Origin: Haliotis rufescens
Taxonomy: Eukaryota
Direction of reading: 5' to 3'
NCBI RefSeq assembly: GCF_023055435.1
Contig: NW_025964355.1
Location: 930,001 to 994,000 of the forward strand
DNA: 64,000 nt
Position 1 is the stretch's first letter; each line of letters starts with the position of its first letter. Below, in pieces: positions 26,042 to 31,311 of this stretch. A model generated the notes under the pieces. That model saw only the letters and a list, made by a program, of their open reading frames with translations. It made no database searches and was not told where the DNA came from. A program made the translations under genes and the position numbers.

Positions 26042-26459
26042 TCACACCTCGTTGACCTTGAGCAAGTCATATCTCCATAGTGGAGAATACTCCTCTTCTG
26101 TACAGGTGTAATACGACAGGCCCCCTGGTTTGAAGGCGACCACCTGGCCATTCCTCTCTGCTGTGTATTGAAGGCGGTGGACCTTTGGATTCGGGTCACA
26201 TAATGCGGCTTCATAGTTTCCATCTGGCACGTAGTAGAAGTACACGTAATCGACGGCTTTCAGGAGTACCTTCGTCCCGCAGGATGCAATGTCGCCACTT
26301 GTTGGGGCCTCATACTCTGATTCGAGACTAATCTGACACATTTCCATGGCCCTACCATTTTCAATCTTATAGAGAGTAACTTCATCATCATCTTCAGGTA
26401 TGACGTATATCTTGAGGTCTGGGCTCACCATTAAGGTTTCCATGTCCTGACTGATGCCA
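26042..26459 (-). CDS. Secreted beta-propeller-like protein, exon 3 (stop)
   Basis: tag|(S)GISQDMETLMVSPDLKIYVI...PTSGDIASCGTKVLLKA...ERNGQVVAFKPGGLSYYTCTEEEYSPLWRYDL; phase 2 matches exon 2. Confidence 0.88.
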
Positions 26460-26692
26460 CTACAGCAACAATAATATATGTGAGTGGACATTTGACTTGA
26501 ATATTTGGATACGAATAAGGATTATCAATAACGACAAAACCAGAATAACCTAAAACGTCACCTTATCAATTGCCCCCAACCTCGATTCATCCGCTTTATG
26601 GTTTGGTATGGTGGTTTTGTACAAATGTTGACTATTGTATACCATGAAGCAGTAACTAATATTCGATTCAATGTCGAAATGAGTTTGTAAAT

Positions 26693-26838
26693 AAGTGAGT
26701 ATGTTTTACGCTGTTGTTAGCAATACTCCAGCACAATCACAGCGGGTTACACCAGAAATTGGCTTCACCAATTGTGCCCATGTGAGGAAACGAACCCGGA
26801 CCTTCGGCGCTTTAACCATTGTTCAACCCCACCGCCCC
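26693..26838 (-). mobile_element. Short tRNA SINE (family A), intronic
   Basis: Family match. Confidence 0.8.
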
Positions 26839-26921
26839 GAATAGCATAATAATATAGGGGTCAAAATCAGATATCACACTTACTTTATAATGGTAGTTTA
26901 CAACTTGTTTCGTTTACTTAC

Positions 26922-27306
26922 CTAAAGGAAATGGTTTCTTCAATATCTACAGAACTGATGTGAACGGGGTCATCTGGCTCAACAATCTTGTAGATTTTGT
27001 TGGAATTACGGCCGTTATAACCTTTTCCAATGTCCCCAATGTAGATGCAATTTGATTTAGATGTTGCACTACAGCGAGCAACTGCCATGTCTTCCCAGTC
27101 ATGGTTTGTGGCGCCTTTTACTTCTATCGTGTTGAGCACTTTACCGTTGGTGGCATTAACCACATAGACATCGTTGAGGTTTCTGGAAGAGGACTTGTCG
27201 TTTGCGGCGTATATAATGCCATCGTGAGACATACTCACGGCCATGCCAGAAATGTCGTACAGGTTGTCATCGTCAAAGTAACCAGAGAAGATACGATCGG
27301 TGAACT
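26922..27306 (-). CDS. Secreted beta-propeller-like protein, exon 2
   Basis: cag|(E)FTD...DISGMAVS...IYAAND...GATNHDWEDMAV..C...CIYIGDIG...IYKIVEP...ISF|gtaagt; phase 1/2. Confidence 0.88.
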
Positions 27307-27384
27307 CTGCCAAAATACAAATTGCATTTTGATATGATACATTGAAATATAAATGGATATTTTAATATGCATTTAACAATAATA

Positions 27385-28090
27385 AAGATTACGATAATGA
27401 AATGTAGATGAATTGTAATGAATTTAATGAGACTGTCCAACACATTGTCAGTAGATGCCCAGCTGCAGCTTTGGCACAAATATAGTATCCTAAGCGACAT
27501 GATGGAGTGGCTTGATGATTTTATTACCGCCTTTGCCATGCTTGTGGTTTTGACACAGAGGTCCATCCATGGTACGACCCGGAATATGTAGAGGGCGTCA
27601 TGGAAATTGATAAATACAATTTATTTTGGAATAGGCCCGTTTACAGCCCCAGATGTATCCATGCCAACAAACCTGATCTTGTCCTTTTTGATAAATCCTA
27701 TGAAATCATTGAATTTTTGGTCCCTTTTGACACCAATGTAAATGACAAGATACAGGAAAAACATGGCAAATATACCTCGCTTTCGAAATGTCAGGCTTGC
27801 ATCCCAAGTACTAAGTTGTCTGACTCCCCATTGTTCTCGGTGTCTTAGGTTTGGTACCTCCCTATCGGTTGACTGACATTGGGAGAGTACCCGGGTTTGC
27901 TACCAGGAATACAGCCCTTCTGACAATCTGGGTTGGTTTGACTAGGCAGAGCTTTCTGGGGGAAGTCCCATTCGCTGTCTGGACTGCGTGTAGAGGGGGC
28001 AAGGGCCCTGGGCTGATGATGAGCCTAACCAGGCTGACTGTGCCAGGATCACCCAAATCCTCTTTGCTACATTTTTATTTTAATATGTAA
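27385..28090 (+). mobile_element. R4/Dong-like (RLE-type) non-LTR retrotransposon 3' fossil
   Basis: CCHC knuckle KCR..NEFNETVQHIVSRCP, RHDGV, then ANKPDLVLFDK..IIEF.VPFD..EK.GKY RLE motifs; ends near a (taa)-rich tract. Confidence 0.8.
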
Positions 28091-28106
28091 ATAATAATTA
28101 TTATTT

Positions 28107-28990
28107 CCCTGTTCTTACCCTTTTCTACTGTAGAGGTAGTCTAGTGTGGCCCCTGTTCTTACCCCTGTCTACTGTAGTGGTAGTCTAGTGTGGCCCCTGT
28201 TCTTACCCTTGTCTACTGTAGTGGTAGTCTAGTGTGGCCCCTGTTCTTACCCCTGTCTACTGTAGTGGTAGTCTAGTGTGGCCCCTGTTCTTACCCCTGT
28301 CTACTGTAGTGGTAGTCTAGTGTGGCCCCTGTTCTTGCCCCTGTCTACTGTATTGGTAGTCCAGTGTGGCCCCTGTTCTTACCCTTGTCTACTGTAGTGG
28401 TAGTCTAGTGTGGCCCCTGTTCTTACCCTTGTCTACTGTAGTGGTAGTCCAGTGTGGCCCCTGTTCTTACCCTTGTCTACTGTAGTGGTAGTCTAGTGTG
28501 GCCCCTGTTCTTACCCCTGTCTAATGTAGAGGTAGTCCAGTGTGGCCCCTGTTCTTACCCCTGTCTACTGTAGTGGTAGTCTAGTGTGGCCCCTGTTCTT
28601 GCCCTTGTCTACTGTAGTGGTAGTCCAGTGTGGCCCTGTTCTTACCCTTGTCTACTGTAGTGGTAGTCCAGTGTGGCCCCTGTTCTTACCCTTGTCTACT
28701 GTAGTGGTAGTCTAGTGTGGCCCCTGTTCTTGCCCTTGTCTACTGTAGTGGTAGTCCAGTGTGGCCCTGTTCTTACCCTTGTCTACTGTAGTAGTAGTCC
28801 AGTGTTGCCCCTGTTCTTACCCTTGTCTACTGTAGTGGTAGTCTAGTGTGACCCCTGTTCTTACCCACGTCTACTGTAGTGGAAGTCCATTGTGCTTGTT
28901 GAGTGGCCCCTGTTCTTACCCTTTTCTACTGTAGAGGTAGTCTAGTGTAGCCCCTGTTCTTACCCTTGTCTACTGTAGTAGTAGTCGTGG
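28107..28990. repeat. 44-bp minisatellite (~20 units), intronic
   Basis: Unit cccctgttcttacccctgtctactgtagtggtagtctagtgtgg. Confidence 0.95.
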
Positions 28991-29559
28991 TAGTAGTAGA
29001 AAATAGAGATAGGGATCGGATAAGGGATCTAATAAAGGATTATATAGAGATCCCATGCTGAGGGATGAGGAACAGTTCGTGTAGTGTTAACCTTTACTGA
29101 TACCTGCAAGGAATTCTCCATGTAGAAGGTACCGAAAAAGCAGCGTATTCAAGTGAAATACTTGTGTAAAGCATGCTCGCATGATTCTGCCACCAATGCA
29201 ACAATATCGGTGATCCGAAAACAGATTCCATTGGGCGTAAAAGGCAAAATAGCAGGGAAAATGATTTGAATGGATCAATGAAAATTAATGCCGACACCAG
29301 GAATTCGCACAAGGGTAAGCATGTTGTGCCCTACTACAAAATGTCTTTGTCGCTTTTGTTTGTAACAATCGTCATCACAGCGAGACGGTAGGACAAACAT
29401 CAAGCGATATTCATTATTAGGTTGGGTGACACTGAGAATGTGAACGGGTGATCTTAAAATACGCCATGGTCGTGGTAAATTTAAACAACAAACTGTGAAG
29501 GCCATCAGATAAGTTTAATAAATTCAGATCATCACAAACCATAAGAGCTGAGATAAGGT

Positions 29560-30070
29560 CATGACCCATATGCGAATCTGTTGTCAAAAGGCGATCATGA
29601 TATTGAATGCTGCAGTCGTCTCCCAGATGACGATTGATCACAAACGTTTAAGAATGGAGGTACTTCATTGGTGTCACACCATGTTCAGAGAAGAGTCGTG
29701 TTTTGGGGCGTACCAGCAGTGTTCCATACCACAGAACGACTGGTATATTATTGGTAGCTGCGTCATGGTGTGGGCTACCCACAAACAAACAAATTCCTTT
29801 TGATGGTCGACTCACTTGGGTTCGTAGAACCCCATACGCGTAGGATTGATTCAGTTAGATATAAATAAAGGATAACATCCGTCGTCACACAGGATATTGC
29901 CAACTACAATTACTGGCCTCATTTAAAGAACTGTAAAATGAAGATGTGCGCCAACGTCCCGTACCGTGTTACACGCTCGATCAAAAGTAGTGGTTCAGAT
30001 AAAAAGGCTACCATCAAAACCTTCATCCAAAGCATGATCGATGTCAGGCAGTTATCCGTGTCACAAAACA
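29560..30070 (+). mobile_element. Highly decayed Tc1 transposase
   Basis: WCHTMFREESCF, GSCVMVWA, KTFIQSM..CQAVI remnants. Confidence 0.55.
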
Positions 30071-30104
30071 TGTGAAGATTCAATTCCCATGTCACATATA
30101 TGTG

Positions 30105-30237
30105 ACTGAGTATTGTTTTACGCCGTTTTTAGCAATATTCTAGCATTGTCACGGCGGGGGACACCAGAAATGGGCTTCACACAAACCCAGGTCTTCGGCG
30201 TGACGAGCGAACGATTTAACCACAAGGCTACCCCAAC
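30105..30237 (-). mobile_element. Short tRNA SINE (family A), internally deleted
   Basis: Family match. Confidence 0.8.
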
Positions 30238-30722
30238 GCTCTCACATACAAGATGTTGCCTGGATGTTGAACAAGCCTTCACTATTGATTTTCAATTGGA
30301 TTAATGCGACCCCTTACTCCTTCCCCAAAAGAGATTTGACTATACACACACATACCTCACTTTAGCAAAACAAATGCTATCAATTCTTATTATGTGTATT
30401 GATCTCAAAGTCAGCCCTGGCGCACAATAAGGTAACAAAATTTAGAGCAGTATATATTTGAAATATTCTAGAGCAAGAGAGACAGATGATTCTTCAACCG
30501 ATTTTCAAAACGAGTTTTTGTTATTTAAATTCTGCAGGCAACATAAAGAGTAAACCTACGTGTATTGGTTCCCTCTGTGAAGGCAGCGTCTGTTGTCATG
30601 CCCCCTTAAAGACAATAAAAAATAACATATCATGACATGAATATTATGGCAATATTTGCACTAATTTTCTCATATCAATTGACATTTTGCGTTTACCGAA
30701 AGAATACAACGAATACTTTTAC

Positions 30723-31311
30723 CTTCATTGACTCCAGCGTTAGTTGTAACTTCAACAGCAGGATTAGATATTTTGTAGTCAGCAATGGCCTTTTTCAAAT
30801 CCTCAATGCGCTGGTTCATCTGTGGTATACCACCAGCAAGAGACGATGCACGTGTGGCTACGCGAGGTACAACAAAATCTGCAGCGGTGCCGAATGGCTG
30901 TTCATTGCTGGTACTCTCCATAGTGTTGTTTTCAGGGCTGTATACACCAGAGTTCTTGAAATAATTTTCAAGATCATCCATGCGATCAATCATGTCTTTC
31001 AGTTTGCGTGAAAGTTTCTTTGTCTGTGAATTAAACGAGACAGTATTCTTAAATCGGCTGCTGGGACCAAACTTAACTGAAAGAGGACTGTTTCCATTCG
31101 TGGAGGAAGTTTGTTCTGAAGAAGTGCCTGAAGATTGCCCCGCCTGGCTTCCAGCGGAGGATGGAACACCGTCAGTTCCGATGGAGGTCATGGGGACATT
31201 TCCAGAGCTGATTTGTTGTGACAGTTCGTCTGCTAAATTTACGTTTATAAATTGAGCTTCCGACGCAGTGATAACTAAGCCAATGACACTCACAAGGGCT
31301 GACACCTTCAT
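30723..31311 (-). CDS. Secreted beta-propeller-like protein, exon 1 (signal peptide, S/G/T linker, two coiled-coil segments)
   Basis: gccatcATG; MKVSALVSVIGLVITASEA-QF...LSRKLKDMIDRMDDLENYF...MNQRIEDLKKAIADY...VNE G|gtaaaa; phase 1 matches acceptor at 27306. Confidence 0.8.

Follow-up and report, generated by a model that had tools for sequence, protein, structure and literature searches.

The stretch of DNA analysed here, 64,000 nucleotides (nt) of contig NW_025964355.1 of the abalone Haliotis rufescens (positions 930,001 to 994,000, referred to below as the window, in whose own numbering all coordinates are given), carries on its minus strand a transcribed gene composed of four coding exons, with a coding sequence of 589 + 45 + 385 + 418 nt that corresponds to 478 codons and a stop. 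The product, of about 478 residues, begins with a signal peptide and a disordered linker rich in Ser, Thr and Gly; two short amphipathic helices follow, then a linker of 15 residues encoded by a micro-exon, and finally a C-terminal five-bladed β-propeller. A first-pass annotation, made from the sequence alone, had described the gene as three exons encoding a secreted protein with a bacterial-type propeller domain, and had proposed that the domain is of old bacterial origin. The sequence does contain the three exons in the phases given, together with every motif quoted, each motif lying within a single exon: DISGMAVS, YAAND, GATNHDWEDMAV and CIYIGDIG are inside the exon 27306-26922, and DMETLMVSP, PTSGDI, ERNGQVVAF and SPLWRY inside the exon 26459-26042. 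The exons of that model, its splice sites and its junction 26922|26459 stand, but a fourth exon, a 45-nt micro-exon at 30604-30560, had been overlooked. The revised gene structure is as follows:

31312..31349, minus strand: 5' untranslated region (UTR), minimum extent; contigs end at 31349 (run X1) and 31332 (run X4)
30723..31311, minus strand: coding exon 1, 589 nt; ATG at 31311, GT donor at 30722-30721
30605..30722, minus strand: intron 1, 118 nt, GT..AG; joint 30603/30722 (cut +1) in 4/4 runs
30560..30604, minus strand: coding micro-exon 2, 45 nt, 15 codons, phase 1 kept; joints in 4/4 runs, AG at 30606-30605, GT at 30559-30558
27307..30559, minus strand: intron 2, 3253 nt, with repeats including a transfer RNA (tRNA)-like short interspersed element (SINE) at about 30110-30245; joint 27306/30560 in 4/4 runs, AG at 27308-27307
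26922..27306, minus strand: coding exon 3 (exon 2 of the three-exon model), 385 nt; blades 1 and 2 and the beginning of blade 3, GT at 26921-26920
26460..26921, minus strand: intron 3, 462 nt, GT..AG, with a SINE-like copy inside; joint 26459/26922 in 4/4 runs, AG at 26461-26460
26042..26459, minus strand: coding exon 4 (exon 3 of the three-exon model), 418 nt; rest of the propeller, stop TGA at 26044-26042
25977..26041, minus strand: 3' UTR, ATTAAA at 26006-26001; contigs end at 25977-25993 in three runs

For the transcript evidence, eight sequencing runs of one organism were identified, the contigs of which contain about 0.3 of the sampled words, near the exonic share; this share and the GT-AG skips match spliced RNA, and on these grounds the runs are presumed to be RNA. 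Four runs (X1, X2, X4 and X6, from 2 studies) were aligned to 25900-31450. The junction 26922|26459 was observed in the contigs of 4/4 runs, with 0 mismatches in the long pieces listed. The direct junction 30723|27306, expected from the three-exon model, was found in 0/4 runs; all four instead join 30723 to 30604 and 30560 to 27306, revealing the micro-exon. Since the latter amounts to 15 codons and keeps the frame, the phases originally assigned remain valid. Contigs drop rare variants, and a minor isoform skipping the micro-exon may exist besides the one observed.

These data bear on the possibility that the locus is due to bacterial contamination or to an error of assembly, an explanation that is favoured by the bacterial look of the domain and by nothing else, and that we regard as practically out of the question. 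In fact, the gene has three spliceosomal GT-AG introns with SINE copies within introns, the contig is large and holds other animal genes, annotated orthologues occur in three other Haliotis species, and spliced transcripts 100% identical in 4 runs refute it. Introns, intronic SINEs and spliced transcripts, together with the paralogue arrays described below, document a true integration into the host genome.

An additional in-frame ATG lies upstream, at 31449, and a start at this position would put 46 residues ahead of the signal peptide. One X2 contig (record 12) runs to 31450, and two contigs stop short of this ATG; the RefSeq orthologue P0151 of H. cracherodii starts at the equivalent of the upstream ATG, and P0001 of H. 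asinina at the equivalent of 31311. As for the introns, the stretch 29992-30363 of intron 2, which holds the tRNA-like SINE copy, was covered by RNA contigs at a depth of 3-7 x 10^4 in each of the four runs, with loose ends resembling a tRNA T-arm, and the region 27388-28131 of the same intron attracted many short, mismatched contigs (depth 30-330), probably representing a dispersed repeat expressed elsewhere. A second tRNA-like SINE copy is located in intron 3, at about 26740-26850. ARAGORN called no tRNA on intron 2 (27300-30720), though the repeats there look tRNA-derived.

The first part of the protein is encoded by exon 1. Its N-terminus, MKVSALVSVIGLVITASEAQ, resembles by inspection a signal peptide (31311-31252), and is followed by the Ser/Thr/Gly-rich linker, by helix 1 (about 31029-30952) and by helix 2 (about 30855-30766). 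Together with the splice sites and the spliced contigs of 4/4 runs, which show the host gene to be spliced and expressed, this agrees with the earlier description of an intron-containing gene for a secreted protein. The same description had included two coiled coils, of which one is well defined: a 21-residue window covering exon-1 residues 100-120 displays a clean heptad pattern, with a score of 0.93 that was matched by 2/200 shuffles. The second helix is short here and was scored only in the orthologue.

A HMMER scan with exon 3 retrieved 2389 representative proteins at E ≤ 1e-3, the top match being P0001, an 'uncharacterized protein' of 470 residues from Haliotis asinina, which is 49% identical over exon 1 (P0001 residues 1-189), 72% over exon 3 and 64% over exon 4 (residues 333-470). 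P0151 of H. cracherodii, 524 residues long, is 98% identical over exon 3. Residues matching the micro-exon are found in both proteins, with which our gene model is collinear, and the models of the sister species agree with four exons. Sister Haliotis species thus already have a model of the gene, without a name of its own and under the label 'uncharacterized protein'.

Structural work on the whole protein was carried out on the orthologue P0001. In its AlphaFold2 model, obtained with a 70-row alignment, the C-terminal ~266 residues form a five-bladed β-propeller, with a predicted local distance difference test (pLDDT) exceeding 90 for most of the segment 200-470 and with some 19 strands, which is consistent with five four-stranded blades; helices 93-118 and 153-182 stand out in an otherwise disordered N-terminal half. 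Comparing this model with 48,161 chains by VIA-align, the first rank was taken by E. coli YjiK (3qqz_A; Z 20.6, root-mean-square deviation (rmsd) 2.7, 219 aligned residues), followed by the five-bladed bacterial glutaminyl cyclases 3mbr_X (Z 19.1) and 3nok_B (Z 18.6), and all later rows had Z ≤ 14.7. Foldseek against the PDB returned only G-beta/WD40 chains (template modelling (TM) score 0.27-0.33, rmsd ~20), an artefact of the helix-plus-propeller shape that was not used, and single-sequence PDB searches with the two propeller exons gave only weak Kelch or chance matches.

To define the family, the profile A1 was built from an alignment of 43 single-domain members. Its consensus (E-x-SGLA-x-S, HNDSG, DWEDIA, YIGDIGDN, EP, DAE, GGDISP-x-G, QGEAV, YYT-x-SEG) corresponds to the motifs that the first-pass annotation had given for uncharacterised bacterial secreted propellers, and both propeller exons match it, exon 3 at positions 31-155 (E 3.6e-40) and exon 4 at positions 160-295 (E 2.8e-22). 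The same profile reaches YjiK 3qqz by sequence with E 1.6e-4, and the nearest named ESM Atlas clusters are SdiA-regulated or phytase-like, all of them bacterial. Pfam and NCBIfam scans of exons and whole members found nothing above threshold, the only signals being weak matches to PF13449 and DUF5074. PF06977 was matched by 0/70 family members at E ≤ 0.01 and by none of the window exons at E ≤ 1, and the Phytase-like PF13449 by 6/70 members weakly (best E 1.7e-4; P0002 scored 22.4 bits against a gathering threshold of 27.6). The propeller thus belongs to a large family without Pfam or NCBIfam model, remotely related to the YjiK/'SdiA-regulated' propellers. Two members from Mya arenaria bear the UniRef name 'Fucose-specific lectin', with no Pfam match behind it, and no paper was retrieved by literature searches with the identifiers of members.

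The relationship with proteins of known structure is therefore a distant one. The C-terminal domain of YjiK (PF06977), the best structural match with 219/243 residues aligned, is, like the abalone domain, a small propeller of unknown biochemical function; however, identity to 3qqz amounts to 14%, YjiK resides in the envelope of enterobacteria whereas the abalone protein is secreted by an animal, and, as said, family members do not match its Pfam model. Bacterial/plant-type glutaminyl cyclases are five-bladed and of about the same size, but identity is 9-11% and none of the Pfam matches of 70 members is to a glutaminyl cyclase. Olfactomedin proteins are composed of signal peptide, coiled coil and five-bladed propeller. 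The abalone protein has the same order of parts, and the gliomedin OLF domain is among the fold matches (4d77, Z 12.2); there is, however, no sequence relation and no OLF among the Pfam matches, so that any likeness would be convergent.

Regarding the distribution of the family, a protein search with the P0001 domain found only 3 proteins, owing to few shared exact words, and was replaced by searches with the A1 profile and with a Lingula protein as query; in these searches only the best 120 rows carry names. With the A1 profile, 1341 proteins were retrieved at E ≤ 1e-5, and the best 120 include 30 rows with a eukaryote name (Lingula anatina and 29 molluscs) as well as 12 with a bacterial one, the rest being without name and many of them carrying a type IX secretion system (T9SS) tail. 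The Lingula query gave 514 matches at E ≤ 1e-10, with 33 eukaryote-named rows among the best 120, namely the query itself and 32 molluscs; the mollusc rows listed comprise bivalves, patello-, veti-, neomphaline and caenogastropods, and the chiton Liolophura. Rows without label inside the eukaryote clade were traced through their clusters to Haliotis, Dreissena, Mya and Magallana, and four short Logan contigs were left without name. No row from other eukaryote groups was seen among the named rows of the best 120 per search. The spread of the family in eukaryotes thus appears restricted, in line with the first-pass annotation: every named eukaryote row listed is a mollusc or Lingula (30/30 and 33/33).

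On the bacterial side, a scan of one genome per species yielded 282 stretches encoding a relative, in line with the earlier reading of the domain as bacterial-type. The best 80 of these 282 name 12 phyla, including Calditrichota, Ignavibacteriota, Bacteroidota, Planctomycetota, Verrucomicrobiota, Armatimonadota, Pseudomonadota and Myxococcota, and all searches together place bacterial members in at least 15 named phyla. Each stands alone as a secreted protein or lipoprotein of about 300 residues, and a T9SS tail is frequent.

To get more insights into the origin of the animal genes, a careful IQ-TREE analysis (LG+C20 with posterior mean site frequencies (PMSF), 308 columns) was performed on 109 of 467 domain rows, hand-picked for taxon spread; P0324, whose match covers <200 profile positions, was dropped. 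The 56 bacterial or bacteria-like rows are on one side of a branch supported at 100/98 and recovered in 200/200 bootstrap trees, and on the opposite side are 49 named eukaryote rows and the four short contigs without name. The phylogeny, which is unrooted, therefore holds the eukaryote rows together. Nearest to the bacterial stem is Lingula, joined by one of the nameless contigs (90/68); the canonical molluscs form a group of 43 rows (93/94), and a long-branch group of 8 rows (97/88) is exclusive to Haliotis. The stem between the bacterial and the eukaryote side measures 0.46 changes/column, compared to a median end branch of 0.59. A FastTree of 355 rows, in which a single clade of 62 tips took in 43/43 labelled eukaryote rows with a node support of 10, was set aside in favour of the careful tree.

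Since the careful tree is unrooted and without outgroup, the direction of transfer has to be read from distribution. We infer that it went from bacterium to animal, because of the breadth of the family in bacteria, its restriction in eukaryotes and the short stem. A single, ancient transfer from a bacterium to a lophotrochozoan is probably the best reading, inferred and not proven: the family would have entered the animal lineage once, before the mollusc/brachiopod split, and introns would have been acquired, and copies expanded, after the transfer.

Vertical inheritance from early eukaryotes or animals, followed by loss outside molluscs and brachiopods and with no transfer at all, would produce the same clean eukaryote/bacteria bipartition, a eukaryote clade opposite a bacterial one being expected in an unrooted tree under vertical descent as well. 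It would also agree with the intron common to all paralogues described below, which makes the gene old in this lineage, and with the fact that, only the best 120 rows per search being visible, lower-scoring members from other eukaryotes could be missed. Nevertheless, we consider it quite unlikely. No other eukaryote occurs among the 30 and 33 named rows, and all labelled members of the eukaryote clade are molluscs or Lingula; bacterial rows appear in the Lingula search from about rank 38 at 39% identity, the Lingula protein being 39% identical to a KSB1 protein and 41-48% to most mollusc proteins; the stem is short when compared to the end branches, and many independent losses would be required.

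The opposite direction, from animal to bacteria, is compatible with an unrooted tree too, and the family does move between bacterial phyla, as exemplified by the rows of Mucilaginibacter and Janthinobacterium, which are sisters at 100. Such a reverse transfer is, however, very improbable, given the at least 15 named bacterial phyla, the T9SS tails and lipoprotein-type N-termini that mark their members for bacterial export, and the greater sequence diversity on the bacterial than on the animal side of the tree. The two rows just mentioned (L097, from a Mucilaginibacter metagenome-assembled genome (MAG) of the Bacteroidota, and L100, from a Janthinobacterium MAG of the Pseudomonadota) are on short branches and reflect either a recent inter-phylum transfer or a binning mix-up.

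Searches for transfer papers naming oyster, limpet and Lingula found none on the propeller family, as judged from abstracts. A compendium of horizontal gene transfer (PMC13342648) mentions Mollusca only in passing in the main text, and its supplementary gene tables may list members. Ancient families of bacterial origin are already known in molluscs as a phenomenon. One of them, msp130, is described in PMC11878542 as a bacterial-origin family of shelled invertebrates with restricted animal spread and bacterial relatives; its fold and family are unrelated to the propeller, and we set it beside the present case by analogy only.

In the abalone, the family is not limited to the gene of the window. 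A search of the 1.33-Gb assembly gave 21 matches for exon 3 and 19 for exon 4, and exon 1 matched only itself. The canonical abalone protein P0069 produced 53 exon-level matches, with about 28 C-terminal halves, distributed over 8 contigs (C1, C25, C68, C101, C323, C557, C577 and C605) and many of them in tandem, so that about 28 copies of the domain are present in the genome. Wherever a paralogue locus shows both halves, its alignment to the profile is interrupted at positions ~141-165, corresponding to intron 3 of the window gene; this intron, its position being common to all such paralogues, predates the expansion. The window gene falls in the divergent Haliotis-only group, together with tandem two-domain proteins and with other helix-preceded forms (P0032, P0053). 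The abalone has, thus, a canonical single-domain copy beside a fast-evolving, Haliotis-only branch in which the propeller is tandem-duplicated or preceded by helices ('stalked'). Further arrangements in H. rufescens are represented by P0023, in which the propeller is fused to Sushi repeats, and by P0153, with a WSC domain followed by two propellers. At one locus (G000:C557:2228942-2268110), three equal-scoring family copies 12.3 kb apart and a fourth nearby make up a recent tandem array.

The first-pass annotation had also pointed out that several conserved positions are altered in the window copy. Column counts over 108 bacterial and 40 canonical eukaryote rows agree for H65 (A), S68/G69 (K/S), D121/N122 (K/G) and Q267/E269 (N/Q); moreover, E48 is changed to D and K179 to E. 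Column E269 is E in 100% of the 108 bacterial and 95% of the 40 canonical eukaryote rows, and Q in the window copy. The latter keeps, on the other hand, S50, G51, S55, N66, D67, D96-W-E-D99, D118, G120, E136, P137, D162, E164, D222, E265 and E285. By sequence, the window protein is a family member by descent, albeit divergent.

In the P0001 model, conserved acidic residues are found, according to the secondary structure, in one blade after another on the first strand or immediately ahead of it. They probably form a ring at the mouth of the channel, comparable to that of metal-binding propellers and predicted to bind metal (Ca2+) or to serve in catalysis. For the wider fold class, the only functional lead is CarP (PA0327) of Pseudomonas aeruginosa, described as a Ca2+-regulated β-propeller, homologous to proteins with the SdiA-regulated domain, that affects Ca2+ homeostasis (PMC10574481). 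It would fit the guess of a Ca2+-binding acidic ring, the link being solely through the SdiA-regulated label.

On this basis, we suggest that the ancestral protein may have been a secreted metal-dependent enzyme or binder, and that the abalone copy would have lost part of the ancestral site and gained the helical N-terminal region. It would no longer perform the ancestral chemistry and might act as an extracellular binding head, of which several copies would be held on a helical stalk. Recognition is preferred to housekeeping chemistry because of the clean heptad, the recurrent multivalency in the clade and the Sushi and WSC fusions; a multivalent extracellular binding protein is, taken alone, a tentative assignment that we hold to be possible.

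A different outcome is that the protein has remained an enzyme, namely a secreted hydrolase with unchanged or shifted specificity, e.g., a Ca2+-dependent esterase or phosphoesterase, whose helices would merely tether or dimerise it. The retention of most of the invariant polar residues, including DWED, N66-D67, D162/E164, D222, E265 and E285, would be in line with this, and so would the weak PF13449 matches in 6/70 members and the presence of a calcium-activated nucleotidase among the fold matches (2h2n, Z 14.4). Yet, E269, invariant in 108/108 bacterial rows, is Q, and H65, D121, N122, K179 and Q267 are replaced too; moreover, the protein is on a long, fast-evolving branch, and no family member has a known activity. 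An enzymatic role appears, therefore, somewhat unlikely for this copy.

Taken together, a host gene of four exons, a bacterial propeller family, a single ancient transfer, an expansion in the abalone and a role as binding head give the joint explanation that we consider rather probable. Besides what has been granted above to vertical descent, several points weigh against it. The clustering of acidic residues at the channel mouth derives from the secondary structure of a model, and that model is not of the window's own protein. The N-terminal helices are short, about three heptads, the second having been scored in the orthologue only, and many invariant residues are kept, so that a changed but real enzymatic activity is possible. 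Furthermore, the gene neighbourhoods at the best 80 of 282 bacterial loci, in which no neighbour family recurs in more than 9/80, offered no operon or functional hint.

Elsewhere in the window, three long open reading frames (ORFs) were observed:

36080-36832, plus strand: long Thr/Ser-rich or acidic-repeat ORF, with a basic stretch and then a hydrophobic segment at its end
42020-43999, plus strand: long hyper-acidic repeat ORF, with a similar basic-then-hydrophobic tail
59900-61138, minus strand: long Thr/Ser-rich or acidic-repeat ORF, with a similar basic-then-hydrophobic tail

The three resemble mucin-like membrane proteins with a single pass, and would form a local family. A run of N at about 40700-41100, an assembly gap or a masked segment, shows as X in two ORF translations.

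A role in shell-matrix calcium handling was considered since molluscs and brachiopods alike make mineralised shells and since genes with hyper-acidic repeats are nearby. According to this proposal, a Ca2+-type bacterial propeller would have been captured once by the mollusc/brachiopod ancestor and turned into a lineage-restricted extracellular recognition or matrix class, with multivalent pseudo-enzyme forms in the abalone (coiled-coil-stalked, tandem-domain, Sushi-fused and WSC-fused) converging on the olfactomedin design. In this full form we regard the proposal as unlikely.

If the joint explanation is true, an ancient and expanded family of bacterial origin would be added to the short list known for molluscs. 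The propeller family itself is large, with thousands of bacterial members, and is outside every curated domain library; one biochemical result would annotate thousands of proteins. The stalked, residue-depleted copies of the abalone would then offer a natural case of an acquired bacterial domain rebuilt as a multivalent extracellular protein.

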